Of a stretch of DNA of 64,000 bases, positions 195 through 64,000 are shown one piece after another. The notes beneath the pieces were generated by a model. The model did not search any database. It had not been told where the DNA came from and worked only from the letters and a program-made list of their open reading frames with translations. Source of the DNA: Thalia democratica (taxonomy: Eukaryota); NCBI GenBank assembly GCA_965202585.1, contig OZ241833.1:5952001-6016000 (forward strand). The letters are read 5' to 3'. The translations under genes and the position numbers were made by a program. Numbering within the stretch: the first letter of the stretch is position 1; the number at the start of each line of letters is the position of its first letter.

Positions 195-1169
195 TTGCTA
201 CGCCGCATGCTTCAGTGCCTTCTTCATTGACTTCTAAATAAGTTTTATGAACAATATCCGACACATGAAGTCCTGTTACATCTGAAATTTTGCTCATATT
301 TGCTTTTTTGAGTGAAAACATGTCAGTCATCCCCAACTTTTCAAAAGTTTCTCGCAAGTTTTTTCGTATTCAAGTTTGAACTTTGGCAGGAGCAGTTTTA
401 TATTTCCTTGGAACTCTGTGCTCCGCTCAATCATGCTTCTCATCTTGCTAACTGTGAGTTTCTGCAAATCATCGTAACTCTTGGTCGGCATGAACAGCCA
501 CATTGAGTACTCCTCTCCTGCGTACGGAATTTCTATACCGTACATTTCATCGTCATAAGCATATTTATAACGAGGCAAGATTTTCGACATCATCGCAATT
601 TGAGTTTGTGTGCCGTCACAATTGTAAAAAGTGGACAGAAACGTGGTTTTCATGTTGAAGCTTAATGACCAAAGACCTTTGAAGTGGACAACGCTGGTTA
701 AGACCATTCTGGTCAGCTCAGTAAGCGACTCGGGAGCGATTGCTCTTTTTATTCTGTTTCCGGTGCTCTCAGCAACATGTTTGTTAATGGCATCTGCACT
801 TCGCTTGCGGTCCGATTTAGTTTTGAATGGCAAGTTTAGCGCCTTGCAACCGAAGCCTTTGAGAAGTTTCAAATAACCACTTTTGACTTTGTACCGGCTT
901 TCAAGGAACAAATTGTTGAAAATTCGGGCCTTGACTGAGGGTTTTTTGGAAGATAACTTTTGAAATTCCTCCAAAACCTCTGTACTTTTATAATTGCCAA
1001 TATAGAGACCAAAGGCTTTCGTTATTTGATCTTCGGTGTTGCCTTCTGATCCGCAATAAATCATGCTAAGGGCCAGGGAGATGCTGAAAGGAGAAAAGAG
1101 AATGTTCTCGTGCGGTGATTTGCTGCTAAACTCAGCGTAGAGGTCATCAATGAACGAATCAAACGACAT
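195..1169 (-). pseudogene. Serpin copy 1, exon 1, with a 1-nt frameshift; RCL exon lies off the left edge
   Basis: Serpin motifs NILFSPFSISLAL, VHFKGLW and EVNEEGTEA, split over ORFs 327-1169 and 163-357. A T6 run at 359-364 is T7 in all other copies. Donor A|GTAAGA at 195/194. The indel could be a homopolymer sequencing error. Confidence 0.8.
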
Positions 1170-2706
1170 TATTCAGATTACTTTTACACTACTACCTAAA
1201 AATGAAAAAAATTAAAGTTGTTGTTTTTAATAGTTTTGGCTGAACTTTGATTGTTAATTTAATGTTAAACTGCTTTTTTGTCATATACTTATGAGCTAAT
1301 ACATCAATATTTAAAAAAAAGATTTTGGATTATGAGTATTTTAAAGATTAATATTACAAGTAAAATATTAATATGCTATATAAAGTCTAATCTTATGCAG
1401 TAGCTAAGATTTTTAAGCAATGTTTTAACGCATTGAGTTGTTTATATATAAAGTAGTAATCAAGCTTTTCATACTGATTATATTTTAAATTATTTTTGTA
1501 AGAAACGGAATATGAAACTTTGTTTATAAAAAACCAGCAACTAGTTTGAGGAAAAATATTTTAAGACGTAGTTTAAACACTACTAATATCTTTACTTGTA
1601 TTTATCTACTTAATTTATAAATCTTAAAAAATAACTTTAAAAAAAGTGTTTCTTACATTTTTGTTATGTAGTTTAGTATAAGGCATAAAAGTAAATTAAG
1701 ATAAAACAGTAATAAAAGTTAATATAACTGTTAGTTAGGAATTAACAAAAGCATTTATACATGTAATTGTATGCAAGTTAGCTGTTTATTTCTACAGCTT
1801 AAAGGTAAATATAATTTTAAAAAAAGCGAAAGAAAATAATTAGGAAATAACTAGAAATAAATATTTATAAAAATAAAAAACCAGGTAATAATACTTAAAC
1901 TCCACAGCTTGATTTTTAGATAAAAAATTTGACATCTTAACGATAAACATTTCAAGTGGACAATTTTGCTCGGCAACTCTTTTGCACGAGCGTCACTTTA
2001 GCATGAAGGGTCACTTTTGCACGAAAGTAAAAAAAATACTAAAAAAAATGAAAAAAAAAAAAGAAAAATATAAAAAGATTAATTAATAATAAAAAAACAC
2101 AAAAAAATACCGACCATGGGTAACGGTTAGTGGTAACAGTGATAGCAAGAAAAAATTACAAAAAATAAAAAACTAGAAAAAATTAAAATAAAATAAACTA
2201 ATAAAAATGCAAAAAATTAAAAAAAAATGCCGAGGGTAAGGGTTAGGAGTAATAGTGATAAACAAAAAACATACGAAATAAAATTATTAATCAAAAAAAT
2301 ACAGGAAAACAAAAAAAAGTATAAAAAATAGATTATAAAAAACCAGAAAAACTAAATAAGAAATTTACGATCGAGGGTAAGGGGTAATAGTGGTAGCAAA
2401 AAAAAGATTAAAATTAATAAAACCAAAAAAAAAATCCTACAGTGCAAAAGTGTCTTCGTGCTAAATTTACCAACCGTGCAAAAGTGTCACCTCGTGCAAA
2501 ATAAATTACCCACCCAATTCAAGTATAAAGATTACATAAAAATAAAATTGTTTAGAAATATACTTTTATAATTAGACAAGCCTTTAATTATTTTTTCACA
2601 TATTGATTATTAGCCAGTTGTTTCAAAACTACGTCATAATAGTTAAAAAATCTATTGAAAAAAATTAAAAACGAATAAAATTTTTTTTGTTTTGTGTGTC
2701 GCTGAA
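1170..2706. promoter_or_regulatory. Divergent intergenic region between serpin and protease (long variant)
   Basis: Start codons point away from each other. A minus-strand acceptor TTTTTAG at 1196 lies 26 nt upstream of the serpin ATG, implying a 5'UTR intron. A conserved AGCCAGTT..CTACGTCATAAT block sits at ~2612-2640. A shared promoter is inferred, not shown. Confidence 0.55.
1958..2514. mobile_element. Non-autonomous foldback/MULE-like DNA element in the divergent promoter
   Basis: Left arm has tandem CACTTTTGCACGA motifs; right arm has inverted (T)CGTGCAAAAGTG motifs. Internal (C)GAGGGTAAGGGTTAG.GGTAA.AGTGATA repeats are separated by A-rich runs. Flanked by a 10-bp direct repeat CATTTCAAGT/CAATTCAAGT, a TSD length typical of Mutator. 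Confidence 0.6.
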
Positions 2707-3534
2707 ATGAAACGTTTCGTAATTTTTTGCTTGCTCTTCCTCCAAGCTTGCACGGGGCAGATGTTGGGAGGAAAACAAGCCAAGGAAGGACAGTTCCCGT
2801 TCGTGGTTCAGATCCGCAATCTGAATTGCCACGGAGTTTGCATTTGTGGAGGCGCAATCGTCGCCCCCCATTGGGTTCTGACGGCGGCGCACTGCGTTCG
2901 AAACAGCAACAACCAAACCACAAAAGTGGCCGTCGTGGCGGGAGACGTTTGGCGGTATCGAAGAGAGGGAGTCACGGGCAGGGTGGAGATCGGGCCGGAG
3001 AAGATACAAGTGTACCCCTACCCCGACTTCGAGCGAGACAGGCTGAACGACGTGGCGCTGCTATTTGTCGAGGAACCGTTCAATTCGAAACCGGAAAATT
3101 CGAAAGTCAAGATGATTGGGTTCGGGTCGGACGATGGTGTCGGGGTGGGCCAGGAGTGCACTGTGATGGGATGGGGATTCACCAGGATCGACTGGAAGAC
3201 CGACCAGAGAAGCAGGCAGTCGCCGGTGCTGAAGTACGGCACGCTGAACATCACGACGATCTACCAGCGCATCATTCATTTCGGAGACCTGAACAGGGAC
3301 GGCCCCTACTTGCTGAACGGGGACTCGGGCGGCCCGCTGGTGTGCAGGGACGCCGAAGACGGGAAGCAGAGGCTGTTCGGGTGGCAGCGAGCGACTGATG
3401 TGGAGAAGAACTCGATTTTTTACGTGAGGTACCGCAGTTTCAAAGGTTGGATCAGAAGGAAGCAAGGCGAGGTGGAAAGAGAAAATGAGGACAAGTTTCA
3501 GAAAGACAAAAGCTACGAAGAATATTCAGTTTAG
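2707..3534 (+). CDS. Secreted S1 (chymotrypsin-fold) serine protease copy 1, 275 aa, intact triad
   Basis: ATG at 2707 (ORF-track start is a TTG). Signal peptide MKRFVIFCLLFLQACTG, then QMLGG, WVLTAAHC (His57), NDVALL (Asp102), GWG and GDSGGPLVC (Ser195). Intronless. AATAAA at ~3581. Confidence 0.9.
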   Translation: MKRFVIFCLLFLQACTGQMLGGKQAKEGQFPFVVQIRNLNCHGVCICGGAIVAPHWVLTAAHCVRNSNNQTTKVAVVAGDVWRYRREGVTGRVEIGPEKIQVYPYPDFERDRLNDVALLFVEEPFNSKPENSKVKMIGFGSDDGVGVGQECTVMGWGFTRIDWKTDQRSRQSPVLKYGTLNITTIYQRIIHFGDLNRDGPYLLNGDSGGPLVCRDAEDGKQRLFGWQRATDVEKNSIFYVRYRSFKGWIRRKQGEVERENEDKFQKDKSYEEYSV

Positions 3535-3712: not shown

Positions 3713-3883
3713 GGGACATGTTCAAAATCCACCAAGTCAAATTCGAGAAACGCTAACCGAACGAGGGTAAGGGTTAGGGGTAACAGTGATAAATAAAAAA
3801 TAAATAAAATTCAAAAATATATAAAATAAATTTGTAAATAAAAAAAGTGTAAAAAAAATTGGGTGGATTTTGATAGTATACCC
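3713..3883. mobile_element. ~170-bp MITE downstream of protease 1
   Basis: Inverted ends GGG..TCAAAATCCACC / GGTGGATTTTGA..CCC enclosing one GAGGGTAAGGGTTAGGGGTAACAGTGATA motif. Absent from the homologous site behind proteases 2, 3, 5 and 6. Confidence 0.55.
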
Positions 3884-4336: not shown

Positions 4337-4916
<580 letters not shown>

Positions 4917-5157: not shown

Positions 5158-6334
5158 GAAATTATGCTAATTTTATGCAAATTTTTATACATATTTTTGA
5201 ACGATTTTATGTCGACTAAAACAGGACATCTGGAAGAGTTAGTGACGTAACATAAATTTTCTGAAATTTTAAAAATAGTTTAAAATACATATTGGATATA
5301 ATTTTTGGGGTAGGAGGGATGGAAAACAACATCAAAAACAGCAGTACGAAAAAGGCTGAAAGCAAGAACGCACAATCGCGCGCAAAGCACGCTGTTGTGC
5401 CCTCTTTGCGAAGCAAAACCGAAAGAAAGCGGAGCTTTCTGAGGTTGGAACGTACAAAGAAAGCGAAGCCTTTAAGGCATGAAAGTTAAAGCAAGATCGC
5501 ACAATCGCGCGCAAAGAGGTTGGGACGCACAAAGAAAGCGAAGCTTTCGAGGCATGGAAGTTAAAGCAAGATCGCGCGCGAAGCGTGCCTTTTTTGCGAA
5601 GCAAAACCGAAAGAAAGCGAGCTTTCTGAGGCAGGAATTTAGGTTAAAGAATTCAGATTTTTTAAAGTTAAAATACTATTTTTTCTTTCTAGTAGAGTAA
5701 TTGTCTTTTAATGCTTAGTTAAAACGGCAGTTTTTAAAGCAGGAATTTAAGTTTTTAAGGCAGGAATTTAGGTTAACGAATTTAGATTTGTTTAAAGTTA
5801 AAATTAGTTGAGTTATTATGTTTTAATACTTAGTTTAAACGGCAGTTTTTAAAAACTTGATGTATTTTTTAAGAGAATTTGAGAAACAGTACAAAATTTA
5901 AAAACCTTATTATTTTTAACACTTTATTTATAATTTTATTTACTTTCTTATCTATTATCGATTATTATTTATTAGTATTTGCTTTATTTGGCTAGCACAA
6001 AAGCGCGCTCTGCGCGCGGTGTGCGATACTTTTAGCTACTTATTACAAACTATTTTCTTACTTATGTAGTTCTTTTTGTTTTGTTTTTAAGTGAATACAT
6101 GTTTAATTTTTTTCTTCGTTTTACATTATCTGTTCGAACTAATTTGTTCTAATAGTTTAAACATAAGTTTACTAAAATTTTAAGAGTTTTTAATAGTATT
6201 TCAAAATTATCATAAATTTGAAAAATTTCTAATTAATATTTTTTTTTTACTTATTATATTATTTATCTGCCTTATTCGGCTAGCACAAAAGCGCGCTTTG
6301 CGCGCGGTGTGCGATGCTCTTGGCTATTTATTAA
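5158..6334. mobile_element. Non-autonomous element with ~128-bp internal tandem repeats and inverted GCGCGC-hairpin motifs (HINE/DINE-1-like, tentative), copy A
   Basis: Shares both boundaries with 13039-14386 but has different flanks. Holds ~2.3 core repeats at ~5350-5635, plus reverse-oriented core-motif copies at ~5990-6030 and ~6280-6320. Confidence 0.5.
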
Positions 6335-8741: not shown

Positions 8742-10379
8742 TCACAGTTTGCTCACCAACGTTTTTCCATCCTCACGACCTTTACATATCTTTTCAGCAG
8801 TTGTTTCAGCCGCCTTGAGGTCTCCAATTTTGCCGTAGAAAATTATGTTCCCTGTGCTGTTGTGTGTTATCAGCACAACAAACTGGTGATTGCAAATGAA
8901 TTCTGCTGGACGGTCACCGAAAGGTCCACTGAATGATGATGCTAGAAATATGCAAAAAGATTAAAACACTCAAGCCATACTGATGTCAAGGTTGAGATCA
9001 ACATACAGTGTTATAAAATATATTGTATTACATAATGAGAGAATAATGTGCAGACAAGAAGTCTTATGGTTATTTTTAAACAAAAATTATAAAATTATTC
9101 ATTTAGAATTGGTAAACAAGATAACCCAAACTTACAAGCTGAAGTAGTTCTCGCTTTGTTAAGTTAATATAATGTAATTTTTTTATAAGTTCAATTTCAT
9201 AGAATTATTACTTAATTATGCATTTTGAATAGACAACTTTTACATTAGGTATCAAGTTTATATTTATACTTGTAGCTAATTTTCATTGAACTTACTATTA
9301 GTCTTTAATAGTGTTTTAAATCATTTCTTATAAAAATAGTTTCATTTTAATACCAGTAAAAATTTAGTTACTCAAATTTGTAGTTTAAATCTAAGTATCT
9401 TACTTGCTACGCCGCATGCTTCAGTGCCTTCTTCGTTGACTTCTAAATAAGTTTTATGAACAATATCCGACACATGAAGTCCTGTTACATCTGAAATTTT
9501 GCTCAAATTTGCTTTTTTGAGTGAAAACATGTCAGTCATCCCCAACTTTTCAAAAGTTTCTCGCAAGTTTTTTTCGTATTCAAGTTTGAACTTTGGCAGG
9601 AGCAGTTTTATATTTCCTTGAAACTCTGTGCTCCGCTCAATCATACTTCTCATCTTGCTAACTGTGAGTTTCTGCAAATCATCGTAACTCTTGGTCGGCA
9701 TGAACAGCCACATTGAGTACTCCTCTCCTGCGTACGGAATTTCTATACCGTACATTTCATCGTCATAAGCATATTTGTAACGAGGCAAGATTTTCGACAT
9801 CATCGCAATTTGAGTTTGTGTGCCGTCACAATTGTGAAAAGTGGACAGAAACGTGGTTTTCATGTTGAAGCCTAATGACCAAAGACCTTTGAAGTGTACA
9901 ACGCTGGTTAAGACCATTCTGGTCTGCTCAGTAAGCGACTCGGGAGCGATCGCCCTTTTTATTCTGTTTCCGGTGCTCTCAGCAACATGTTTGTTAATGG
10001 CATCTGCGCTTCGCTTGCGGTCCGATTTAGTTTTGAATGGCAAGTTTAGCGCCTTGCAACCGAAGCCTTTGAGAAGTTTCAAATAACCACTTTTGACTTT
10101 GTACCGGCTTTCAAGGAATAAATTGTTGAAAATTCGGGCCTTAACTGATGGAGTTTTGGAAGATAACTTTTGAAATTCCTCCAAAACCTCTGTACTTTTA
10201 TAATTACCAATATAGAGACCAAAGGCTTTCGTTATTTGATCTTCGGTGTTGCCTTCTGATCCGCAATAAATCATGCTGAGGGCCAGGGAGATGCTGAAAG
10301 GAGAAAAGAGAATGTTCTCGTGCGGTGATTTGCTGCTAAACTCAGCGTAGAGATCATCAATAAACGAATCAAACGACAT
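8742..10379 (-). CDS. Serpin copy 2, join(10379..9404, 8941..8742), 391 aa, no signal peptide, ends -SKL
   Basis: 976-nt exon, phase-1 donor A|GTAAGA, 462-nt intron, acceptor TTTCTAG|CA. Exon 2 gives T-SSFSGPFGDRPAEFICNHQF...IIFYGKIGDL...VSKL*. AATAAA at 8722-8727. In-frame TGA two codons upstream of the ATG. Confidence 0.88.
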
Positions 10380-10870
10380 TATTCAGATTACTTGTACACT
10401 ACTATCTAAAAATGAAAAAAAATAAAGTTGAAAGAAATTAAAATTGTTATTTTTCTATAGTTTTGGCTGAACTTTGATTGTTAATTTAATGTTAAACTAC
10501 TTTTTTGTCAAATTCTTATAACATAATACATCAATATTGAAAAAAAGAAGATTTTGGGTAATGAGTATTTTAAAGTTAAATATTACAAGTAAAAAATTAA
10601 TATGCTATATTAAGTCTAATCTTATGCTACAGCTAAGGCTTCTAAGCAATGTTTTAACGCATTGATTTGTTTATATATAAAGTAGTAATCAAGCTTTTCA
10701 TACTGATTATGCTTTAATTATTTTTGTAAGGAACGGAATATGAAACTTTGTTTGTAAAAAACCAGCAACTAGTTTGAGGAAAAACATTTTTTGACGTGGA
10801 AATAATACTTAAACTCCACAGTTTGATTTTTAGATAAAAAATTTGACATACTAAGGATAAATATTCAAGT

Positions 10871-11205
10871 CGAAACGGGTCACTTTTGCACGAAGGGACA
10901 CTTTTGGACGAGCGTCACTTTTGCACGAGAGTAAAAAAGTATTTAAAAAAAAAGAAAAAAAAAATAGAAAAACTAATTAATATTGAAAAAATAAAAAGAA
11001 TTACCGATCGAGGGTAAGGGTTAGCGGTAATAGTGATAGTAAAAAAAGAATTACAAAAAATAAAAAATAAAACCGGCCGAGGGTAAGGGTTAGGGGTAAC
11101 AGTGATAAAAAAAGCATACCAATAAAACTATTAATTAAAAAAATACAGGAAAACTAAATAAATTATAAAAAATCGATCATAAAAAACCAGAAAAGCTAAA
11201 TAAGA
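10871..11205. mobile_element. Truncated foldback/MULE-like element (left arm and internal repeats only)
   Basis: Three CACTTTTG(C/G)ACGA motifs and two GAGGGTAAGGGTTAG motifs; the right inverted arm is deleted relative to 1958-2514. Confidence 0.55.
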
Positions 11206-11309
11206 GATTTATTAGCCAGTTTTCTCAAACCTACGTCATAATGCGTTAAAAAATATATTAAAAAAAAAACGAATGTTTCACATCTTTGTTTGTTTTGTGT
11301 GTGGCTGAA

Positions 11310-14386: not shown

Positions 14387-14402
14387 AATCTTTGTACCTT
14401 TG

Positions 14403-51550: not shown

Positions 51551-51950
51551 ACTTAAACCTCTTTATTGTGTAATTATGGCAATATATTCAACATTTGATT
51601 AAAAAACTAAAACAAACTTCTTATGTACTAGTAGCTTAATAGTTAGATAGCTTAGCAATTAAAAGTTTTATATAAGTATCCTAATACAAAATAAGCAGAC
51701 AAAAAAATACTAATTTAAATAGACAACATGACTAAATTGGTAGTAGTAAATAAAGTTATGAAAAGAACTTGTTGAAAGAACTTGTGGAACTTTTGCAAGT
51801 CTAATGATAAAGGTAAAGTTAATAACGTAAATAAACAACATAAGTGTAACATAACGTAAAATGTACATTGAAACACTAACTACCTCATTATAACTCACTA
51901 GATTTTTTAATAAATAAAAAAATAACTGTTATTATGATCAAATCACTCAC

Positions 51951-52106
51951 AAGGTTAACTGATCGGTTGTGAAGACCGGTTGAAGCGTACAAGTTGTTCT
52001 GGTGCTGCTCTGCCTGCCTCAACAGATCGCAATTCTTCTCCAGATCTTTCCCGAGGAATCCGTACCTTTCCTCGAAGTTGACGTCAAAGTAGTTGTTGTC
52101 GGCCAT
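51951..52106 (-). CDS. Duplicate of the unidentified 52-codon exon
   Basis: Same translation as 19901-20056. Confidence 0.5.
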
Positions 52107-53722
52107 TATGTTCTTGTATATCACTTGTGAGGTGTGCTTCTGTTGAACACACATATTTATAAAATTGCTCAGACACACACAGTGTTTACCAGAAAAAATC
52201 AGTTAATTATCAACTATTATTGGTAGCATATGGAATAATTACCAAACTATATCGCATTTTCAAGTTTAAATGTAGTTGACTTGATAAAGATTTGTTGTAC
52301 CAAAAGCGACAACCACTAATAAGCCAGGGGCAACAATGAAACATCATATGAAAGATGCTATTACGTTATTTTTTCTCGTCTCCCACTTTCAATCTTCACT
52401 CTAACGTTACTATAGTAGTTACCGGTAGAACGGTAAGAAAAAGTATTTTATCAAATCAATTTTGGCCAACTCTCCCGAATTTAATTATAACGGGTAAACA
52501 GCGGGTGCATGACCATTCACTTCAAAAATATATATGTTCTTTATTTCAGAAAGCATTTATCCGAGCTGTAACATATATATAGTTTTACTTAAAAATAATA
52601 CTAAGTTTATAATTTTTTGGGAAGTACTTAAGAAATACTATAATTTAGTTTCGACAATTTTAAAAAATAGACTTTTACCAGTTTAAAATAACTTTTTACA
52701 ATCTTGTTTTTATAATAAAGTTAAAGCAACAACAAAAGTAATATTATTATGTATTTAGAAATATTACTAACTTGTAAAAGCAATTTATTAGGCTAAACAG
52801 GTATATATAAAAATTTCAAACACATTAACAATTCATATGATGATTTGATAAATGATGATTAAAACTAAATTCAAAAATACTTTAGTTCTTCTTTCATAAA
52901 TTATTGAACTTTACTTTAATTTATTTTTGACTATTTTTAGACGGAACTGTTACACTCATATGAATGTATGAATAAATTAGTTGTTACATTTAGTTTAGTC
53001 TCTTGTAAAAAATTTTTTACCAGTATTTACAGCTATTCAAATTCTTATTTATTATTTAAGAGAATAAAAACATAACCTTTGCACATTTTAGTTTACAAGG
53101 TTTGATCATACCAATTCGATCATCAGACCACAAGTTGTTGTTTGTACATTTTACAATTAATAGATTAAAATTTCAACAACATAGTTTAAAAGATAAAGTT
53201 TCTATTTTAAATTAGGTAATTAAGCACGTTTAGTTTATAAATTTTTCTAATGAGTGCTCATTTTCTTTATAAGCTTGTAAGTATTTATAACTAATAAAGT
53301 TTTAATTTCTTTGAGCTTTAGCTTTTTTATTTTGCAAATTAATAATATTTAAATTTGAATTATTTTGATATATTTAAATTTAAATTTGAATATTTAAATA
53401 TTACCACTTAGGTAAAATTTGATCTAAAACTTATCTTAAAGTAAATTCATTTTCTTTGAAAAGCTATAAAGTAAAAAATAGTTCAAATAACACGTAAAAT
53501 TCAAACATTTTTATTATAGAATACATTAAGTTTTTATTCATACTGTTGTTTAATTCAAAAACTAAAATGTAATTGTTAAATATTAAAACTTATTATAATA
53601 CTCAAAAAAATGAATCACTACTTTAAATAAACTTAATTTTGTTGATAGTTTTAACATTCGCAGTTAAAGGTTATTTTTACAATTATCTGAGGTAGGACTA
53701 TTTATTGAGTATCTTTTGTGTA

Positions 53723-55308
53723 TCATAAAGTCATTTTATTATAGTGTTTAAAATATGTTCCGTAGAAAATGATGTTGCCTGTGCTGTTGTGTGTTATCAG
53801 CACAACAAATTGGTGATTGCAGATGAATTCGGCTGGTCGGTCACCGAATGGTCCACTGAATGATGATGCTAAAAATATGCAAAAAGTTTAAAACACTCAA
53901 GCCATACTGGTGTCAAGGTTGAAATCTACATAATGTGTTATAAAATATCTTGTATTACATAAAAAGAGAATAATGTGCAGACAAGAAGTCTTTTATAGTT
54001 CTTTTTAAACAAAAATTAATAAAACTTATAAAGTTATTCATTTAGAATTGGTAAACAAGATAACCCAAACTTACAAGCTGAAGTAGTTCTCGCGTTGTTA
54101 GGTAAATATAATGTAATTTTTTTATAAGTTAAATTTAAAAAATTATTACTCAGTTTTGCATTTTGAATAGACAAGTTTTACATTAGGCATCAAGTTTATA
54201 TTTATACTTGTAGCTAATTTTTATTTAACTTACTACCATTAATAGTATATTAAATCTTATAAGAATAGTTTCATTTTAATACTAATAAAAATTTAGTTAC
54301 TCAAATCTGTAGTTTAAATTTAAGCATCTTACTTGCTACGCCGCATGCTTCAGTGCCTTCTTCATTTACTTCAAGATAAGTTTTATGAACAATATCCGAC
54401 ACATGAAGTCCTGTTACATCTGAAATTTTATTCAAATTTGCTTTTTCGAGTGAAAACATGTCAGTCATCCCCAACTTTTCAAAAGTTTCTCGCAAGTTTT
54501 TTTCGTATTCAAGTTTGAACTTTGGCAGGAGCAGTTTTATATTTCCTTGGAACTCTGTGCTCCGCTCAATCATGCTTCTCATCTTGCTGACTGTGAGTTT
54601 CTGCAAATCATCGTAACTCTTGGTCAGCATGAACAGCCACATTGAGTACTCCTCTCCTGCGTACGGAATTTCTATACCGTACATTTCATCGTCATAAGCA
54701 TATTTGTAACGAGGCAAGATTTTCGACATCATCGCAATTTGAGTTTGTGTGCCGTCACAGTTGTAAAAAGTGGACAGAAACGTGGTTTTCATGTTGAAAC
54801 TTAATGACCAAAGACCTTTGAAGTGGACAACGCTGGTTAAGACCATTCTGGTCAGCTCAGTAAGCGACTCGGGACCGATTGCTCTTTTTATTCTGTTTCC
54901 GGTGCTCTCAGCAACAAGTTTGTTAATGGCATCTGCACTTCGCTTGCGGTCCGATTTAGTTTTGAATGGTAAGTTTAGCGCCTTACAACCAAAGCCTTTG
55001 AGAAGTTTCAAATAACCACTTTTGACTTTGTACCGGCTTTCAAGGAACAAATTGTTGAAAATTCGGGCCTTAACTGAGGGAGTTTTGGAAGATAACTTTT
55101 GAAACTCCTCCAATACCTCCGTACTTTTATAATTACCAATATAGAGACCAAAGGCTTTCGTTATTTGATCTTCGGTGTTGCCTTCTGATCCGCAATAAAT
55201 CATGCTGAGGGCCAGGGAGATGCTGAAAGGAGAAAAGAGAATGTTCTCGTGCGGTGATTTGCTGCTAAACTCAGCGTAGAGATCATCAATAAACGAATCA
55301 AACGACAT
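53723..55308 (-). CDS. Serpin copy 7, join(55308..54333, 53868..53723), 373 aa, chimeric C-terminus
   Basis: As copy 4, plus Pro->Leu in FMPTK. Confidence 0.75.
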
Positions 55309-55799
55309 TATTCAGATTACTTGTACACTACTATCTAAAAATGAAAAAAAATAAAGTTGAAAGAAATTAAAATTGTTATTTTTCTATAGTTTTGGCTGAA
55401 CTTTGATTGTTAATTTAATGTTAAACTACTTTTTTGTCAAATTCTTATAACATAATACATCAATATTGAAAAAAAGAAGATTTTGGGTAATGAGTATTTT
55501 AAAGTTAAATATTACAAGTAAAAAATTAATATGCTATATTAAGTCTAATCTTATGCTACAGCTAAGGCTTCTAAGCAATGTTTTAACGCATTGATTTGTT
55601 TATATATAAAGTAGTAATCAAGCTTTTCATACTGATTATGCTTTAATTATTTTTGTAAGGAACGGAATATGAAACTTTGTTTGTAAAAAACCAGCAACTA
55701 GTTTGAGGAAAAACATTTTTTGACGTGGAAATAATACTTAAACTCCACAGTTTGATTTTTAGATAAAAAATTTGACATACTAAGGATAAATATTCAAGT

Positions 55800-56134
55800 C
55801 GAAACGGGTCACTTTTGCACGAAGGGACACTTTTGGACGAGCGTCACTTTTGCACGAGAGTAAAAAAGTATTTAAAAAAAAAGAAAAAAAAAATAGAAAA
55901 ACTAATTAATATTGAAAAAATAAAAAGAATTACCGATCGAGGGTAAGGGTTAGCGGTAATAGTGATAGTAAAAAAAGAATTACAAAAAATAAAAAATAAA
56001 ACCGGCCGAGGGTAAGGGTTAGGGGTAACAGTGATAAAAAAAGCATACCAATAAAACTATTAATTAAAAAAATACAGGAAAACTAAATAAATTATAAAAA
56101 ATCGATCATAAAAAACCAGAAAAGCTAAATAAGA
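55800..56134. mobile_element. Truncated foldback/MULE-like element
   Basis: Copy of 23750-24084 at +32,050. Confidence 0.55.
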
Positions 56135-56238
56135 GATTTATTAGCCAGTTTTCTCAAACCTACGTCATAATGCGTTAAAAAATATATTAAAAAAAAAACG
56201 AATGTTTCACATCTTTGTTTGTTTTGTGTGTGGCTGAA

Positions 56239-57040
56239 ATGAAACGTCTCGTAATTTTTTGCTTGCTCTTCCTCGGAGCTTGCTTAGGGCAGATGTTGGG
56301 AGGAAAACAAGCCAAGGAAGGACAGTTCCCGTTCGTGGTTCAGATCCGTAATCTGAATTGCCACGGAGTTTGCATTTGCGGAGGAGCAATCGTCGCCCCC
56401 CATTGGGTTCTGACGGCGGCTCACTGCGTTCGAAACAGTAACAACCAAACCACAAAAGTGGCCGTCGTGGCGGGAGACGTTTGGCAGTTTCGAAGAGAGG
56501 GAGTCACCGGCAGGGTGGAGATCGGGCCGGAGAAGATCCAAGTGTACCCCTACCCCGACTTCGAGCGAGACAGGCTGAACGACGTGGCTCTGCTGTTCGT
56601 CGAGGAACCGTTCAATTCGAAACCGGAAAACTCGAAAGTCAAGATGATTGGCTTCGGGTCGGACGAAGGCGTTGGGGTGGGGATTCACCAAGATCAACTG
56701 GAAGACCAACCAGAGAAGCAGGCAGTCGCCGGTGCTCAAGTACGGCACGCTGAACATCACGACGATCTACCAGCGCATCATTCACTTCGGAGACCTGAAC
56801 AGGGACGGCCCCTACTTGCTGAACGGGGACTCGGGTGGCCCGCTGGTGTGCAGGGACGCCGAAGACGGGAAGCAGAGACTGTTCGGGTGGCAGCGAGCAA
56901 CTGATGTTGAGAAGAACTCGATATTTTACGTGAGGTACCGCAGTTTCAAAGATTGGATCAGAAGAAAGCAAGACGAGGTTGAGAGAAAAAATGAGGACAA
57001 GTTTCAGAAAGACAAAAGCTACGAAGAATATTCAGTTTAG
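56239..57040 (+). pseudogene. Serine protease copy 6, 26-bp deletion frameshift
   Basis: 802 nt; same GGGGTGGG-bounded deletion as copies 2 and 3. Confidence 0.9.
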
Positions 57041-57967
57041 GAGGGAGTCATCGCAATGTTTATTTTGTACCTTCTTTTTGCAATGGAATAATTCTTGTTT
57101 TTTTACATTTGAAACTTTTTTATTGTTTCAAAACGAACATAAAGTGTTTATTCTAGAACTTATTAAACTTATTTGTAAAGGTTCTATTAAGTTAAGTACA
57201 TCTTGAATTCTACTGTCTCAATATATTTGACAACTTAACATGAATAAATAAAATTACTTGTCACCTTTCAAATTAGAAATGAAAACATTTTCTTTAGGCG
57301 GGTTAGAAAAAAAAAAACTTATTCATTACCCTTGAAGATTTCTAATACTTTCAATTCACAAACATTACTCAAACGTCACATTTTAAACTAACGTTGTTTA
57401 TCGAGCGACAAAAAAAAAGAACTCATAAAGTCTGTCCTAGGATCTGGTGTACGAAAAAACCTTTCGGTTATCAAGTCGTACCTTTTAATGTCTTGTGCAG
57501 GCCGTATTAAGTGTTCGGACTCCGAACTTCGGAGTTCTTTGTTTTAGATAGCTTTTAGCCGAGCTATAACATATAGAGTTCAACTTTATAGTTTAATTAA
57601 GTTAACAATTTTTTAGAAAGTACTTAACAAAAACTAAAATTAAGTTTTGCTAACTTTGAAAAATAGACTTTCACCAGATAAAAAAAAACTTTTTACAGAC
57701 TTTTTATTTAATATAAAGTTAAAGCAGAAACAAAAGTAATATTAACGTATACTTAAAAGCATTTTTAAATTGTAAAAGCAATATGTTATGCTAAACATAA
57801 AAATTTGTTAAGCTCAACATAAAAATAAAAATTTTAAACACTTAAACAACTGTCAATGCTGATTAATACTAAAATCAAAAACACTTTGATTCTTCTTTCA
57901 TAAGTTATTGAAATTTACTTTGATTATTTTTATTTTAGACGGAACTGTTATACTCGTGTGAATTTGT

Positions 57968-59315
57968 GAAATTATGCTAATTTTATGCAAATTTTTATAC
58001 ATATTTTTGAACGATTTTATGTCGACTAAAACTGGACATCTGGAAGAGTTAGTGACGTAACATAAAATTTCTGAAATTTAAAAAATAGTTGAAAATATAT
58101 ATTGGATATAATTTTGGGGTGGGTGGGATGGAAAACAAAATCGAAAACAGCAGCACGAAAAAGGCTGAAAGCAAGGTCGCACAATCGCGCGCAAAGCGCG
58201 CTGTTGTGCTTTCTTTGTGAAGCAAAACCGAAAGAAAGCGGAGCTTTCTGAGGTTGGGACGTACAAAGAAAGCGAAGCCTTTGAGGCATGAAAGCTAAAG
58301 CAAGATCGCACAATCGCGCGCGAAGCGCGCTGTTGTGCCTTTTTGCGAAGCAAAACCGAAAGAAAGCGGGCTTTCTGAGGTTGGGACGTACAAAGAAAGC
58401 GAAGCTTTCGAGGCATGGAAGTTAAAGCAAGATCGCACAATCGCGCGCGAAGCGCGCTGTTGTGCTTTTTTGCGAAGCAAAACCGAAAGAAAGCGGAGCT
58501 TTCTGAGGTTGGGACGTACAAAGAAAGCGAAGCTTTCGAGGCATGGAAGTTAAAGCAAGATCGCGTGCCTTTTTTGCGAAGCAAAACCGAAACAAAGCGA
58601 GCTTTCTGAGGCAGGAATTTAGGTTAGAGAATTCAGATTTGTTAAAGTTAAAAGACTATTTTTTCTTTCTAGTAGAGTAATTGTCTTTTAATGCTTAGTT
58701 AAAACATCAGTTTTTAAAGCAGGAATTTAAGTTTTTAAGGCAGGAATTTAAGTTAACGAATTTAGATTTGTTTGAAGTTAAAATTAGTTGAGATATTATG
58801 TTTTAATACTTAGTTTAAACGGCCGTTTTTAAAAACTTGAAGTATTTTTTAAGAGAATTTGAAAAATAGTACAAAATTTAAAAACCTTATTATTTTTAAC
58901 ACTTTAATTATAATTTTATTTACTTTCTTATTTATTATTAATTATTTATTAGTATTTGCTTTATTTTGCTTGCACAAAAGCGCGCTCTGCGCGCGATGTG
59001 CGATACTTTTAGCTACTTATTACAAACTATTTTCTTACTTATGTAGTTCTTTTTGATTTGTATTTAAGTGAATAGATATATTAACTTTTTTCTTCGTTTT
59101 ACATTATCTGTTCGAACTAATTTGTTCTAATCCTTAGTTTAAACATAAGTTTTCTAAAATTTTAAGAGTTTTTAATAGTATTTCAAAATTATCATAAATT
59201 TGAAAATTTTCTAATTAATATTTTTTTTTTACTTATATATTATTTATCTGCCTTATTCGGCTAGCACAAAAGCGCGCTTTGCGCGCGGTGTGCGATGCTC
59301 TTGGCTATTTATTAA
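57968..59315. mobile_element. 128-bp-repeat element, copy D
   Basis: Matches 25918-27265 at +32,050. Confidence 0.5.
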
Positions 59316-61354
59316 AATCTTTGTACCTTTGCACTTTTGACTTTGTACCGGCTTTCAAGGTTGTCTTGGAAAAAAAGTTAATTTTTATATAATTGCAAAA
59401 CGAGCAACAAATATCATAACATTTTAACTTTGAAATAGGCAAAAACATCAATCTTGGGTTTAAAAAGAACTTATGAAACACAAATATAATTTTAATTTTT
59501 GAAAAAAAAACAATGTTCTTAATTTCATTGTGAGTACACAGTGCTTTTCATGAATTTACTGAAAACGATAAAAAACCAATGTAATGTTAGGCTTATTCGA
59601 AAAAGTACAAAAAAGTTATTTATTTCTAAGAACGCTAAAATTAAAAGATATTACGTAACAATGGATAAGTTTTGTTGTTTTTTGAAGACACTTTTTTATA
59701 TGGCAGATTTGAATGATAGGGCTGAGTTGACATTATATGTATTGAAAGTAACATGTTAAGGCTTCAGAGAACTGCTATCTTGTAAATACTGTTTATCTCT
59801 CTTTATTATCTTTAATTGAAGTTTACATTTCTAATTTGTTTAATAATAAAATTTAGTAAAAATTAGTTGTTTAAAATATACTAGTGATTTATTTAGTATA
59901 TTAGTGGTAGTTTAAGTTATCTGTATTTATATATAATTGTTTAAAATTGTTAGATCCTGTTAAATGTTCATATTATTATTAGTATTTGTTATTGTTATTG
60001 ATTCCATATATTTATATTCCCTATGTTGATATGCATATTTGATATTCTGATATTCTAATATTGCCTAATATTGTAAGTAACAGTATTTTAAGATGATCTC
60101 AAGTTACTCAGAGGCAGTATCTGTTCCGTTGTGGCTGCCAGGCCCCGCAAACGGACACCAAGATCACAATAGAGTCTAAGGACTAGAGTAAGAACTTTTA
60201 GCCATGGATTTTCAAATGATAAGTTTTATCTAAAATTTGCTTTGAAAAAGTTTTTTTTGAAGTATATAGTAAGTTTCACAAAATTAAGCAGCTAGCAAAG
60301 ACTTTTTCAGATAAGTATGGCCTGCCGACTAAAAAAGCTTCCAATTCATATTCTAACCTAGAGGCATATAGTTTTTAATATTTAAAAAACTAACTTTGTA
60401 CTCTTAATAAATTTAGAATTTTATTTAATACAATTCAAATCTGAAAACATCGATCGTTTAGTGAAAAAACTGTTTTTGTGGTATAAAGATAAAGTTTTGA
60501 TTTTTTAGTTTTAGTTGTAAAATACTAATTTTAGTTTTTTCTTGAAAATTGATAACTGAAAAAGCTCAAATTTCTATTTGTTATACAACTTCAAAAATAG
60601 TTTAAGAAAAGTGCGTTTCTTATTTAACTTTAGATAAGTAATTCAAAATCTCTTGGTTTGTAAGGGTAGAAACTAAGCTCTTATATATAAACTAAGTCAT
60701 TTTTTACCTTAGATAAATTTTCTTTTTCTTTTGAAAAGACTATGTTAATTAGAACAACAATAATTAGTATATAATAATTTATTTTAGAAAAAAATCTTTT
60801 GTTAAAAAAAAATATTTTTAGTAATTCTCAGGGTTTGTATAATTCAGATTACAGTCAGTTACAACACTGTAAATATTTTAAAAATTTTTACAACTTATTT
60901 AACTATTCTACCTTTGTACGGGTCTATTTGAAGTATTTAATTATTATACCTTTACAGCTGCAATTTTCTGTTAAGCGTATTGTTACCACTGTTAGGTTTT
61001 AGCTATTGCTTAACATCTTTAAGTTATACAAGTATATATTAATTCATTATACAAAGATACAAAAGTAGTGACACAAATTTATTACAGTCTAAACCAAATA
61101 TTTTCAACAACGTAACAAAGTATAACCAAACAAACAATTATACGGGTTTTGTACACACCTAACAGCGATGAACTTCTTAATTTAATTTTTTTGAACGAAC
61201 TCAGTATTGAAAAATTATATAATAACTTCAACATATCTCACAAAAACAACAAACTAAATACAAAAGCAAACAGAGTTGCATTCAAATTAATGGTTCAAGA
61301 ATAATTACGCAACAAGTCGAAGATCTTTATTGCTTTACGAAGCAAGTCAGCTCT

Positions 61355-62994
61355 TCACAATTTACTCACCAACGTTTTTCCATCCTCGCGACCTTTACAT
61401 ATCTTTTCAGCAGTTGTTTCAGCCGCCTTGAGGTCTCCAATTTTGCCGTAGAAAATGATGTTGCCTGTGCTGTTGTGTGTTATCAGCATAACAAATTGGT
61501 GATTGCAGATGAATTCTGCTGGTCGGTCACCGAAAGGTCCACTGAATGATGATGCTAGAAATATATGCGAAAAGATTAAAACACTCAAGCCATACTGATG
61601 TAAAGGTTGAAATCAACATTCAGTATTATAAAATATCTTGTATTATATAATGAGAGAATAATGTGCAGACAAGAAGTCTTATAGTTCTTTTCAAACTAAA
61701 ATTAAGAAAACTTATAAAATTGTTTATTTAGAATTGGTAAACAAGATAACCCAAACTTACAAGCTGAAGTAGTTCTCGCTTTATTAAGTAAATATAATGT
61801 AATTTTTTTATAAGTTCAATTTAAAAAAATTATTACTTACTTTTGCAGTTTGAATAAACAACTTTTACATTAGGTATCAAGTTTGTATTTATATTTGTAG
61901 CTATTTTTATTTAACTTACTATCTGTAATAGTATTTTAAATCTTATAAGAATAGTTTCATTTTAATACTAGTGCAAATTTAGTTACTCAAATTTGTAGTT
62001 TAAATCAAAGCATCTTACTTGCTACTCCGCATGCTTCAGTGCCTTCTTCATTGACTTCTAAATAAGTTTTATGAACGATATCCGACACATGAAGTCCTGT
62101 TACATCTGAAATTTTGTTCATATTTGCTTTTTTGAGTGAAAACATGTCAGTCATCCCCAACTTTTCAAAAGTTTCTCGCAAGTTTTTTTCGTATTCAAGT
62201 TTGAACTTTGGTAGGAGCAGTTTTATATTTCCTTGAAACTCTGTGCTCCGCTCAATCATGCCTCTCATCTTGCTAACTGTGAGTTTCTGGAGATCTTCGT
62301 AACTCTTGGTCGGCATGAACAGCCACATTGAGTACTCCTCTCCTGCGTACGGCATTTCTATACCGTACATTTCATCGTCATAAGCATATTTGTAACGAGG
62401 CAAGATTTTCGACATCATCGCAATTTGAGTTTGTGTGCCGTCACAATTGTAAAAAGTGGACAGAAACGTGGTTTTCATGTTGAAACCTAATGACCAAAAA
62501 CCTTTGAAGTGTACAACGCTGGTTAAAACCATTCTGGTCAGCTCAGTAAGCGACTCGGGAGCGATTGCTCGTTTTATTCTGTTTCCGGTGCTCTCAGCAA
62601 CAAGTTTGTTAATGGCATCTGCACTTCGCTTGCGGTCCGATTTAGTTTTGAATGGTAAGTTTAGCGCCTTGCAACCGAAGCCTTTGAGAAGTTTCAAATA
62701 ACCACTTTTGACTTTGTACCGGCTTTCAAGGAACAAATTGTTGAAAATTCGGGCCTTAACTGAGGGAAGTTTAGAAGATAACTTTTGAAACTCTTCCAAA
62801 ACCTCTGTACTTTTATAATTACCAAAATAGAGACCAAAGGCTTTCGTTATTTGATCTTCGGTGTTGCCTTCTGATCCGCAATAAATCATGCTGAGGGCCA
62901 GGGAGATGCTGAAAGGAGAAAAGAGAATGTTCTCGTGCGGTGATTTGCTGCTAAACTCAGCGTAGAGGTCATCAATGAACGAATCAAACGACAT
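61355..62994 (-). CDS. Serpin copy 8, join(62994..62019, 61554..61355), 391 aa
   Basis: Intact; RCL SSFSGPF; its partner protease is expected at ~64,500, outside the window. Confidence 0.85.
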
Positions 62995-63781
62995 AATTCA
63001 GATTACTTGTACACTACTATCTAAAAATGGAATAAATTAAAATTGTTATTTTTAATAGTTTTGGCTGAACTTTCATTGTTAATTTAATGTTGATATACTT
63101 TTTTTGTCATACACTTTTAAGCTTATACATCGGTATTAAAAAAAAAGATTTTGGGTAATGAGTATTTTTAAGTTTAATGTTACAAGTAAAATTTAATATG
63201 CTATATTAAGTCTAATCTTATGTTACAGCTAAGGTTTCTAAGCAATGTTTTAACGCATTGAGTTGCTTATATATAAAGTAGTAATCAAGCTTTTCATGCT
63301 GATTATGCTTTGATTATTTTTGTAAGGAACGGAATTTAAAATTTTGTTTATAAAAAACCAGCAACTAGTTTGAGGAAAAATATTTTAAGACGTAGTTTAC
63401 AACACTACTAATATCTTTACTTGTATTTATCTACTTAATTTCTACATCTTTAAAATTAACTTTAAAAAAGTATTTCTTACATTTTTGTTATGTAGCTTAG
63501 TATAAGGCATAAAAGTAAATTAAGATAAAACAGTAATAAAAGTTAATATAACAGTTGGTTAGGAATTAACAAAATTATTTATACATGTAACTGTATGCAG
63601 ATTAGCTGTTTATTTCTACAGCTTAAAGGTAAATATAATTTAAAAAAAAGCGAAAGAAAATAATTAGGAAATAACTAGAAATAAATATTTATAAAAATAA
63701 AAAAGAAGGTAATAATACTTAAACTCCACAGTTTGATTTTTAGATAAAAAATTTGACATCTTAACGATAAACAATTCAAGT

Positions 63782-64000
63782 GGACAATTTTGCTCGGCAA
63801 CTCTTTTGCACGAGTGTCACTTTAGCATGAAGGGTCACTTTTGCACGAAAGTAAAATAAATTACTAAAAAAAATGTAAAAAAAAAAAGAAAAATATAAAA
63901 AGACTAATTAATAATAAAAAAACACAAAAAAATACCGACCAGGGGTAACGGTTAGTGGTAACAGTGATAGCAAGAAAAAATTACAAAAAATAAAAAGTTA
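63782..64000. mobile_element. Left part of a foldback/MULE-like element, cut by the window end
   Basis: Matches 31733 onward. Confidence 0.55.

Follow-up and report, generated by a model that had tools for sequence, protein, structure and literature searches.

Granzyme-type proteases are stored in the secretory granules of the killer or secretory cell, and their activation dipeptide is cut by cathepsin C. Intracellular cytoprotective serpins of the clade-B or ov-serpin-like type include SERPINB9, which acts against granzyme B, as well as SERPINB1 and C. elegans SRP-6 (PMC11222584, PMC8630627, PMC8755814). The genes described in this study are neighbours, whereas in mammals the gene of a guard serpin does not lie next to that of its target protease. 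Tandem arrays of digestive or secreted S1 proteases and clusters of serpins are found in invertebrates, such as the Ixodes serpin clusters (PMC13116602). The locus studied here resembles these arrays in its lineage-specific direct tandem duplication, its gene conversion and its mixture of intact and broken copies, but it differs in that its unit places a protease and a serpin head to head, whereas the usual arrays are single-family. With the eukaryotic toxin-antidote elements, such as peel-1/zeel-1, sup-35/pha-1 and wtf, it shares only tight linkage and potentially opposing activities. To our knowledge, a genomically hard-wired unit of a protease and its guard serpin has not been described in animals.

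The stretch of DNA analysed, hereafter the window, comprises 64,000 nucleotides from Thalia democratica, a marine animal with an AT-rich genome. It contains six genes for S1A (trypsin-fold) proteases, all on the plus strand, and eight serpin genes, which are arranged as follows:

195 to 1169, minus strand: serpin S1, exon 1 only, with exon 2 beyond the left edge; one frameshift
1170 to 2706, no strand: spacer of pair 1, 1537 bp, GC 0.23
2707 to 3534, plus strand: protease T1, 275 aa, intronless, canonical
8742 to 10379, minus strand: serpin S2, 391 aa; exon 1 at 10379..9404, exon 2 at 8941..8742
11310 to 12111, plus strand: protease T2, broken by a frameshifting deletion common to T2, T3 and T6
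16426 to 18065, minus strand: serpin S3, 391 aa, intact, unpaired
21673 to 23258, minus strand: serpin S4, 373 aa, C-terminal extension replaced
24189 to 24990, plus strand: protease T3, broken by the common deletion and one premature stop
29305 to 30944, minus strand: serpin S5, 391 aa, intact
32452 to 33279, plus strand: protease T4, frame open, Trp for Gly before Asp-Ser
43135 to 44744, minus strand: serpin S6, 391 aa, intact, intron of 434 nt
45548 to 46375, plus strand: protease T5, frame open, Gly-to-Trp as in T4
53723 to 55308, minus strand: serpin S7, 373 aa, near-identical to S4, tail replaced likewise
56239 to 57040, plus strand: protease T6, broken by the common frameshifting deletion
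61355 to 62994, minus strand: serpin S8, 391 aa, intact

The ATGs at 2707, 11310, 24189, 32452, 45548 and 56239 open trypsin-family frames, and all six proteases have a divergent serpin on the opposite strand, the ATG-to-ATG spacers of T1 to T6 being 1537, 930, 930, 1507, 803 and 930 bp. This confirms a sequence-only reading of the same DNA, which had claimed divergent pairing at 0.8-1.5 kb. Its further claim of tidy pairing holds in one direction, in that every protease has a serpin, but eight serpins stand against six proteases. S8 is expected to have its protease just past base 64000, as predicted from homology with 29774-33929, while S3 has none, owing to a repeat boundary situated at 18447, 382 bp ahead of its start codon.

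We consider it fairly probable, though well short of certain, that the locus is a lineage-specific tandem array that arose by direct segmental duplication of two neighbouring genes together with gene conversion, in which the serpin is a clade-B-like guard and the pairing a matter of common descent. Repeated direct segmental duplication through unequal crossing-over would have built the array from a block that happened to carry two adjacent divergent genes. One encodes an intronless, strongly codon-biased S1A protease that is secreted or granule-stored, and the other a leaderless two-exon serpin of the inhibitory type, which would serve as a suicide-substrate guard against serine proteases reaching the cytosol, possibly including the adjacent protease. 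The uniform pairing would then reflect shared descent from one adjacency rather than repeated selection for a cassette.

The repeats in the array are all direct, with none inverted. Between pairs, homology is continuous across the serpin, the spacer ends and the protease, so the members of a pair were copied together, and the similar dS values of serpins (0.11-0.16) and proteases (0.10-0.16) fit this co-duplication. Thus, the earlier claim that the pair is the duplicated unit stands as far as joint copying is concerned, but the recent units are not single pairs; they measure 12.9 kb (two serpins and one protease) and ~32 kb, and S3 was copied without a protease. The two long repeats are:

8833 to 18447, no strand: direct repeat with a 12.9-kb period (S2-T2-S3), ~98.9% identical to 21710-31326 and 53760-63375
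18446 to 31951, no strand: direct repeat with a ~32-kb period, 99.8% identical to 50496-64000

Further blocks of 99.8-100% identity lie at 20481-21700, 46883-48102 and 52531-53750. In addition to blocks that are 98.9-100% identical, there are four older pair lineages with a noncoding divergence of 7-8%. The six pairs descend from one ancestral adjacency and therefore amount to one observation of linkage, not six, a caution for any genome scan in which uniform pairing within an amplified block might be counted several times. Between 18446-31951 and 50496-64000 we find 27 differences, only 3 of which fall in 8.5 kb of noncoding DNA, while 24 fall in 4.0 kb of serpin and protease genes (exons and introns); another comparison of recent blocks places 101 of 108 differences in genes. 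The array has been homogenised by gene conversion, and with young-duplicate differences almost all genic it is a clear case of concerted evolution.

That part of the array is an assembly artefact, made of uncollapsed haplotypes or mis-joined repeats, appears to us a doubtful but not negligible alternative. It would account for identities of 99.8-100% over 1.2-13.5 kb and for the scarcity of noncoding differences beside the genic ones, which could be polishing mixtures of paralogous reads. The S1 frameshift also fits, since it lies within a homopolymer run and may be an assembly error. However, recent tandem duplication with gene conversion yields an identical picture, and the four older lineages, given their noncoding divergence, cannot be artefacts. 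Artefactual near-identical blocks could alter the copy counts but not these lineages.

The sequence-only reading had instead proposed a cassette of weapon and self-protection, modelled on granzyme B and SERPINB9. In such a cassette an exported protease, whether a weapon or a digestive effector, and a dedicated leaderless guard serpin would be driven by a shared divergent promoter, and the two would have been selected and multiplied together. Its layout, the inhibitory type of the serpin, the co-duplication and a weak motif hint described below survive our analysis, but there is no sign of selection on the pair as a unit, and we regard the cassette as rather unlikely. The make-up of the two proteins bears on it in both directions. 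The protease matches Pfam PF00089 (Trypsin, E 5e-31), and an AF2 model of T1 (pLDDT 85) returns S1A proteases only in Foldseek, with probability 1.0 to thrombin, factor D, PR3 and chymotrypsin. Among solved structures, its best sequence matches include factor D, chymotrypsin, hepsin, PR3, granzyme K and azurocidin, and the named database entries that match it best include granzymes A and K. The gene is intronless and the His, Asp, Ser triad is invariant in a 24-sequence family alignment. As had been claimed, the N-terminus is a classical signal peptide (MKR and a 9-residue hydrophobic core, Kyte-Doolittle maximum 3.4-3.6). It is followed by an invariant Gly-Gln and then by Met/Ile-x-Gly-Gly (Met-Leu-Gly-Gly in T1), which predicts a prosegment of at most one or two residues before the mature N-terminus; from this we infer that a dipeptide propeptide may be removed in the granzyme style. 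The chymotrypsin fold, the triad, the very short prosegment and the missing Cys191-Cys220 disulfide are shared with the group of granzymes, neutrophil serine proteases and factor D. In contrast to this group, the window protease shows only ~25-30% identity, lacks the 168-182 disulfide and has an extra Cys pair near the N-terminus and a conserved, charged C-terminal tail of ~25 aa; residues 189-192 and the 215-226 region align to the group without confidence. Asp189 is absent, and the protease is therefore not tryptic.

For the cassette, the signal peptide on one gene and its lack on the other speak in favour, and so does the very short proregion, which would make an intracellular guard useful. 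The absence of Asp189 is likewise in keeping with the Gly-Pro-Phe in the serpin reactive loop. The number and state of the copies speak against it. Serpins outnumber proteases by eight to six, and one serpin was copied with no protease. Only T1 combines an open frame, the canonical triad and Gly-Asp-Ser-Gly-Gly, and thus has the fold, His57, Asp102, Ser195 and Gly193 of S1A proteases, yet its paired serpin S1 is frame-broken. Three of the six proteases (T2, T3 and T6) are broken, and T4 and T5 carry Trp at the near-invariant oxyanion-hole Gly193 (chymotrypsin numbering), so that these five depart from the S1A pattern. The protease side of the array is already decaying.

The serpin belongs to Pfam PF00079 (MEROPS I4). 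Of the 370 positions in the profile, exon 1 spans 5-327 (E 9e-79) and exon 2 spans 339-367 (E 7e-5), which completes the match, the gap between them being the variable reactive loop. The S2 intron is GT-AG and 462 nt long, and donor and acceptor are conserved in seven window copies; the donor lies after the hinge at the same place in the metagenomic serpin relatives L086, L090 and L091, and the acceptor is confirmed in L091. By sequence, the best solved-structure matches are Drosophila Spn4, neuroserpin, SERPINB1 and tick salivary serpins, and the top matches in the searches of solved structures and named proteins include SERPINB1 (leukocyte elastase inhibitor) and PAI-2, although identity to any named serpin is ~33-36%. 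The earlier claim of a leaderless serpin is borne out: no signal peptide is found at the N-terminus (hydrophobicity maximum 1.3), the profile begins at residue 5, and every copy examined has an in-frame TGA 6 nt before the ATG. Since this TGA is downstream of the only conserved acceptor-like site (T-tract/AG), splicing from an upstream exon into that site cannot supply a leader. Serpins of the inhibitory type trap their target protease in a covalent complex, and they have a Glu-Glu-Gly-Thr-Glu-Ala hinge with small residues at P12-P9 and a loop long enough to insert. The window hinge reads EEGTEA-CGVA, with a small residue at P12, in agreement with this consensus, and the loop from P17 Glu to the conserved Phe is 24 residues long, the mode of 109 homologues (range 22-29). 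S5 differs from the other copies by one loop substitution, Gly to Glu.

These features are those of clade-B serpins and make a clade-B-like guard role plausible by analogy. Unlike ov-serpins, which have no C-terminal extension beyond the serpin fold, the window serpin carries a clade-specific extension of 22-24 aa, so that 52 residues separate the conserved Phe motif from the end, compared with 27-32 in 103 of 112 homologues. The relatives P0241, P0242 and P0244 have this extension as well. S4 retains a complete serpin core, matching the profile up to position 368 of 370, but its tail is replaced at the point where it meets a 1.2-kb repeat; S4 and S7 are the two serpins altered in this way. 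The tripeptide at the extreme C-terminus deserves separate mention. A PTS1 peroxisomal signal is a Ser-Lys-Leu-type tripeptide in this position, and the five full-length window serpins end in -SKL, an ending found in none of the 112 serpin homologues. In the closest relative, P0241, an SKL stands at the corresponding alignment position, but the frame continues for 15 more residues, and P0242 and P0244 end differently. As for the cassette, two properties of the serpin weigh against it: the canonical loop register puts Pro at P1, with Pro-Phe one register on, and a cytosolic serpin would meet a lumenal protease only after leakage.

Gene pairs with a bidirectional promoter are head-to-head, their transcription starts are under 1 kb apart, and they have a single conserved promoter region in common. 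In the window, the conserved flanks are separate, ~370 bp with a TATA box on the serpin side and ~125 bp on the protease side. The spacer of pair 1 has ~400 bp by the serpin and ~120 bp by the protease in common with other pairs, and its middle is variable and repeat-rich. Both kinds of flank contain a 12-mer, AATGCGTTAAAA, examples of which are:

10652 to 10663, minus strand: AATGCGTTAAAA in a serpin flank, ~260-275 bp ahead of the ATG and immediately following a TATATATAA box
11240 to 11251, plus strand: AATGCGTTAAAA in a protease flank, ~60-70 bp upstream of the ATG, by an invariant ACTACGTCAT block

The 12-mer is in the sense orientation in all eight serpin 5' flanks; in the protease 5' flanks it is exact at T2, T3, T5 and T6, has one mismatch at T4 and is degenerate at T1, and it has no other exact occurrence in the window. 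In four pairs, only 465-577 bp lie between the putative TSS-proximal 12-mers. This common element, a weak hint of shared regulation, and the complementarity of a secreted with a leaderless product would also fit a selected functional pair, and together with the head-to-head spacing of 803-1537 bp they count in favour of a cassette. The serpin relative L087, on the other hand, shows no conservation of the 12-mer.

The dN/dS ratios are 0.06-0.20 for serpins and 0.15-0.30 for proteases, so both genes are under purifying selection, which together with their similar age is in line with a cassette. Their codon usage is not. GC3 is 0.70 in the protease and 0.45 in the serpin, against a noncoding GC of ~0.24, and this difference argues against matched expression of the pair. 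The protease relatives likewise have high GC3 (0.60-0.77). The protease is probably very highly expressed and secreted or granule-stored, the level of expression being read from codon bias alone, to which GC-biased gene conversion could contribute.

Conserved pairing in related genomes had been set as a test of the cassette, with unlinked genes in relatives as the outcome that would count against it, and our results come close to that outcome. In a sister species represented in marine metagenomes only (~72% nucleotide identity to the window), contig L001 has no serpin or serpin flank in 1345 bp upstream of the protease, and contig L090 has no protease or protease flank in 1552 bp upstream of the serpin. 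The shortness of the contigs limits this result to distances of up to ~1.6 kb, and in relatives the partner may lie farther off or the linkage be of a larger scale. For more distant protease relatives there is no serpin within 1.8 kb (L084) or 5 kb (L002) upstream, and the partner is also absent from L089 and L091. In the relatives each gene keeps its own flanking sequence. For the protease this amounts to ~125 bp on the 5' side and ~700 bp on the 3' side, and for the serpin to ~320-370 bp on the 5' side. The sizes of the two clades also disfavour a cassette, with ~30 metagenomic members for the protease (31-64% identity) but only four serpin exon 1 relatives above 44% identity. Both the protease clade, previously unnamed, and the serpin clade with the C-terminal extension are known solely from marine plankton metagenomes, and the window documents them together.

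The sequence-only reading had also raised a selfish toxin-antidote module of the peel-1/zeel-1 or wtf type, in which the protease would kill progeny or gametes without the linked serpin and amplification would be drive. Nothing in the evidence indicates such a mechanism, and we hold it to be extremely improbable. Elements of this kind are marked by distorted transmission, by a toxin that the parent or gamete delivers and an antidote made in the zygote, and by presence/absence polymorphism. The close linkage between a gene that may do harm and one that may inhibit it would suit this reading, as would the expansion in copy number, and nothing else does. The window genes have no sequence similarity to known toxin-antidote elements and belong to unrelated protein families of an ordinary, housekeeping type. 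Known eukaryotic elements are not arrays of direct segmental duplicates, as this plain direct-repeat array is; the protease family is large and its members are solitary in relatives; and the putative toxin is broken or altered in five of six copies, with purifying selection in the older lineages like that of normal genes.

A more specific version of the cassette, which we judge quite improbable, would be a true lineage cassette in which a secretory cell makes very large amounts of a protease without a real zymogen stage, and a shared promoter motif co-drives a dedicated leaderless serpin, maybe routed by -SKL, that protects this cell. The array would then be diversifying the protease, the Trp193 copies being resistant to inhibitors. 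If selection on the pair as a unit were proven, the locus would offer a protease with a hard-wired intracellular inhibitor of its own, a rarity among animals, and a natural system in which to study how secretory cells withstand proteases without a zymogen stage. The Trp193 copies have a counterpart in human trypsin-3, mesotrypsin, in which Gly193 to Arg confers resistance to protein inhibitors (PMC8609519). T4 and T5 likewise exchange this near-invariant Gly for a bulky residue, but Trp differs from Arg, the protease background is another one, and the likeness is of sequence alone. With a dN/dS of 0.2 between T4 and T5, these open copies are natural Gly193-to-Trp variants kept under purifying selection.

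The window is AT-rich (about 30% GC overall, 21-28% in noncoding stretches), contains no N runs, and its recognisable genes belong to two families only. Six plus-strand ATG frames encode trypsin-fold proteases (T1-T6; Pfam PF00089, E 5e-31) and eight minus-strand frames encode serpins (S1-S8; Pfam PF00079, E 9e-79); no other genes were found within the 64 kb, and Rfam and tRNA scans of the whole window gave no matches. The protease starts proposed by the sequence-only reading (2707, 11310, 24189, 32452, 45548 and 56239) are exactly the ATGs of the trypsin-fold frames, and each protease does have a divergent serpin at the claimed 0.8-1.5 kb, the ATG-to-ATG distances being 1537, 930, 930, 1507, 803 and 930 bp for the pairs S1-T1, S2-T2, S4-T3, S5-T4, S6-T5 and S7-T6. 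The protease is an intronless gene of 275 aa whose N-terminus is, as that reading held, a textbook signal peptide. In the two-exon serpin gene, exon 1 runs through the hinge (…EEGTEACGVA) to a strong donor, and the intron of 434-464 nt ends in a T-rich acceptor. The remainder of the reactive loop and the final strands come from exon 2, which aligns with the last part of the serpin profile (positions 339-367 of 370). Donor and acceptor are kept in all seven copies lying wholly within the window. Three serpin relatives from metagenomes (contigs L086, L090 and L091) have the post-hinge donor at the matching position, and L091 also confirms the acceptor. The spliced serpin is 391 aa in S2, S3, S5, S6 and S8. 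Alternative reactive-loop exons as in insect serpins were rejected, because each serpin has exactly one exon 2 by tblastn with the C-termini of more than 100 serpins.

The serpin is indeed leaderless, with no hydrophobic N-terminus and a serpin domain that begins at residue 5, and an in-frame TGA 6 nt 5' of the ATG bars an N-terminal extension, as had been claimed. A conserved T-tract followed by AG lies 27 nt 5' of the ATG (10406-10420; present in all serpins and also in the serpin relatives on L086 and L087), which looks like the acceptor of a 5'-UTR intron or of a trans-spliced leader. An extension via an upstream exon was rejected, since the TGA falls between this acceptor-like site and the ATG and would block the extension even if an upstream exon were spliced there. 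The remaining long ORFs were also rejected as genes. Some run antisense through the GC-rich protease genes, and the others are products of a 127-bp tandem repeat, GC-rich and in 3.1 copies, that lies 3' of the broken proteases (13239-13635, 26118-26514 and 58168-58564; a related stretch lies at 5158-5631). Read-through of this repeat yields spurious ORFs of 95-168 aa, among them those at 13097-13655 and their counterparts in the other copies. Between the T4 unit and the S6 unit lies an 8.3-kb stretch (33924-42246), mostly single-copy and 21-24% GC, with no ORF of 70 aa or more.

The reading best supported by our analysis is that two neighbouring genes form a young tandem array. The array would have been made by unequal crossing-over and gene conversion, and its two genes would encode a secreted protease, highly expressed, and an inhibitory-type serpin that lacks a leader. 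All of its repeats are direct and none is inverted. Four older pair lineages can be told apart, S1-T1, S5-T4 (with S3 and S8), S6-T5, and S2/S4/S7 with T2/T3/T6, and these are 7-8% apart in noncoding DNA. On top of them are very recent repeats: one with a 12.9-kb period and 98.9% identity, which holds two serpins and one protease, one with a period of about 32 kb and 99.8% identity, and a 1.2-kb segment in three copies. The claim that the pair is what gets duplicated thus stands in part: the pairs do descend from one adjacency, but the unit of recent copying is not the pair. Since all six pairs come from that single adjacency, the finding that every protease has a serpin is one observation and not six. 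It holds for six of six proteases, but the reverse does not, as there are eight serpins for six proteases. A repeat boundary 382 bp 5' of its ATG leaves S3 without a protease, and the partner of S8 would fall just beyond base 64000. The copies singled out here and below are as follows.

16426-18065, minus strand: serpin S3, without a protease partner
32452-33279, plus strand: protease T4, open frame, Trp at the oxyanion-hole Gly193
45548-46375, plus strand: protease T5, open frame, Trp at the oxyanion-hole Gly193

The unequal copy numbers speak against a self-protection cassette, in which the leaderless serpin guards the producer cell from the neighbouring protease and which we consider rather unlikely. 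The decay of the protease copies also argues against it. T2, T3 and T6 have one frameshifting deletion in common and T3 has a further premature stop, while T4 and T5 replace Gly193, a residue conserved in 90% or more of a family alignment of 24 sequences, where T4 and T5 are the sole exceptions. T1 is the only canonical protease copy in the window. Its neighbour S1 has a single-base frameshift, possibly an assembly error since it falls within a homopolymer run. The serpin core is complete in S4 and S7, but their C-terminal tail is a different one, because their exon 2 runs into the 1.2-kb repeat. This segment is present three times at 99.9-100% identity (20481-21700, 46883-48102 and 52531-53750), and its edge (21710/53760) cuts the last codons of both serpins and gives them a new tail. 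None of the window's pairs has two canonical members; S5-T4 and S6-T5 come closest, each an intact serpin with an open protease frame carrying the Trp substitution, S5 having one reactive-loop substitution. In mesotrypsin, replacement of Gly193 by Arg gives resistance to protein inhibitors (PMC8609519), and the Trp of T4 and T5 resembles it at the level of sequence only. T4 and T5 have a dN/dS of 0.2 between them, which makes the Trp form look unlike a pseudogene in decay.

Compared across the older lineages, the serpins have dS values of 0.11-0.16 and the proteases of 0.10-0.16, a similarity that indicates a similar age, as co-duplication predicts. dN/dS is low in both families (0.06-0.20 and 0.15-0.30, respectively), and both genes have thus been maintained in working order. 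The younger blocks differ mostly within the genes themselves. When 18446-31951 is compared with 50496-64000, 24 of the 27 differences are within serpin and protease genes and 3 are in 8.5 kb of noncoding DNA; between 8833-18447 and 21710-31326, 101 of 108 are within the two genes, 58 of them in one serpin intron. Such clustering in the two gene families is the signature of either gene conversion among paralogues or mix-ups during assembly polishing.

No close named relatives were found for either protein. For the serpin, the best matches are metagenome ORFs at 52-64% identity, and tick serpins come next at about 35%. About 30 proteins related to the protease, with identities of 31-64%, all come from marine metagenomes (Tara Oceans and others), and the next matches, at about 23-30%, are an elastase-like protein of Aplysia, a rodent serine protease and vertebrate granzymes. 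A scan of metagenome contigs with the protease alignment returned only distant proteases (at most 32% identity), none from this clade, and the patterns were generic S1 motifs. Contigs presumed to come from a sister species, with about 72% DNA identity to the window, carry the protease (L001 and L003) or the serpin (L087, L089, L090 and L091). The 1345 bp 5' of the protease on L001 contain neither serpin coding sequence nor its conserved flank, and the 1552 bp 5' of the serpin on L090 contain neither protease sequence nor its flank. The upstream parts of the relatives' serpin and protease contigs do not overlap, as they would with a longer spacer. When flank lengths are allowed for, a head-to-head partner within about 1.6 kb is excluded on these sister-species contigs; all pairs of the window are spaced more tightly. 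No serpin lies within 1.8 kb of the more distant protease relative on L084, nor within 5 kb of the one on L002. The absence of close partners in relatives goes against a conserved tight cassette, while a looser linkage may lie beyond the reach of these short contigs. Nothing beyond the linkage of the two genes in this window points to a selfish toxin-antidote element. In the sister-species serpin, exon 1 is broken up into two or three ORFs on L089, L090 and L091, three independent assemblies, reflecting either a pseudogene there or low-coverage errors. A 3.5-kb contig, L094, has a serpin exon-2-like ORF (P0242, 2832-3074) with no exon 1 detectable in the 2.8 kb upstream, where the window intron is about 0.45 kb.

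The protease has its catalytic His, Asp and Ser. A Gly-Gln is invariant directly N-terminal of the Met/Ile-x-Gly-Gly, leaving at most one or two residues between the end of the signal peptide and the mature N-terminus. Asp at position 189 and the 191-220 and 168-182 disulfides are absent, and a charged C-terminal tail ending in -EYSV is conserved. The AF2 model (pLDDT 85) predicts a generic chymotrypsin fold, and segments 189-192 and 215-226, on which an assignment of S1 specificity would rest, have no reliable alignment with solved proteases. GC3 is 0.70 in the protease versus 0.45 in the serpin, with noncoding GC of about 0.24. It is 0.60-0.77 in protease relatives (L001, L002, L003, L084 and L085), on contigs whose remaining sequence is 22-27% GC, and 0.26 in the serpin relative on L086. 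This extreme bias is specific to the protease family and would reflect translational selection on a very highly expressed gene; its inequality between the two genes is a further point against the self-protection cassette.

The hinge of the serpin is of the inhibitory type and its loop length is the mode among 109 homologues. By analogy, the serpin plausibly works like the intracellular guard serpins (PMC11222584, PMC8630627, PMC8755814). By canonical count P1 is Pro (…FSGP/FGDR…); one register further, P2 is Pro and P1 is Phe, which would suit a chymotrypsin-like enzyme, the register being ambiguous from sequence. The loop is identical across the window copies save for the S5 substitution, indicating that the paralogues are not diversifying their targets, and the sister-species loop differs. 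A C-terminal extension of 22-24 aa is absent from 103 of 112 homologues and is common to three metagenomic relatives (P0241, P0242 and P0244), short sequences that an exhaustive search found where a word-based search with the exon-2 ORF gave no matches. In S2 (8742-8822), S3, S5, S6 and S8 the extension ends in -SKL, a terminus seen in none of the 112 homologues. The -SKL tripeptide is the classical PTS1 peroxisomal signal. It is not terminal in the three relatives, and in the closest, P0241, SKL at the aligned place is followed by 15 more residues, so peroxisomal targeting of the serpin is only putative. A literature search for peroxisomal serpins or head-to-head serpin/protease arrays returned nothing relevant.

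The serpin 5' flank is kept over about 320-370 bp in L087, L089 and L090, with a TATATATAA box about 290 bp 5' of the ATG, and the conserved 5' flank of the protease spans about 125 bp on L001 and L003 and includes an invariant ACTACGTCAT block. The middles of the spacers are variable and contain a short dispersed repeat that is also on L084. Separate conserved flanks around a variable middle suggest that each gene has its own compact promoter. The dispersed repeat, probably a small mobile element, is about 115-175 bp long with 74-88% identity among copies (2231-2342, 3715-3873, 11001-11186, 32004-32119 and 33461-33615) and on L084 (659-832) lies upstream of the protease relative. The 12-mer AATGCGTTAAAA is in sense orientation in all eight serpin flanks, exact in the flanks of T2, T3, T5 and T6, with one mismatch in that of T4, and nowhere else exactly. 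By our rough estimate a chance match of this kind between two flanks has a probability of a few percent, and the 12-mer is not kept in the serpin relative on L087; it hints weakly at shared regulation or at a general start-site motif. About 700 bp 3' of the protease stop (46376-47089, 12112-12806 and copies) is 72-75% identical to the sister-species contigs (L001 2162-2879; L003 1107-1820), with no consistent reading frame. This region has diverged less than the gene's synonymous positions (dS about 0.7-0.8) and could be a 3' UTR or regulatory region under constraint.
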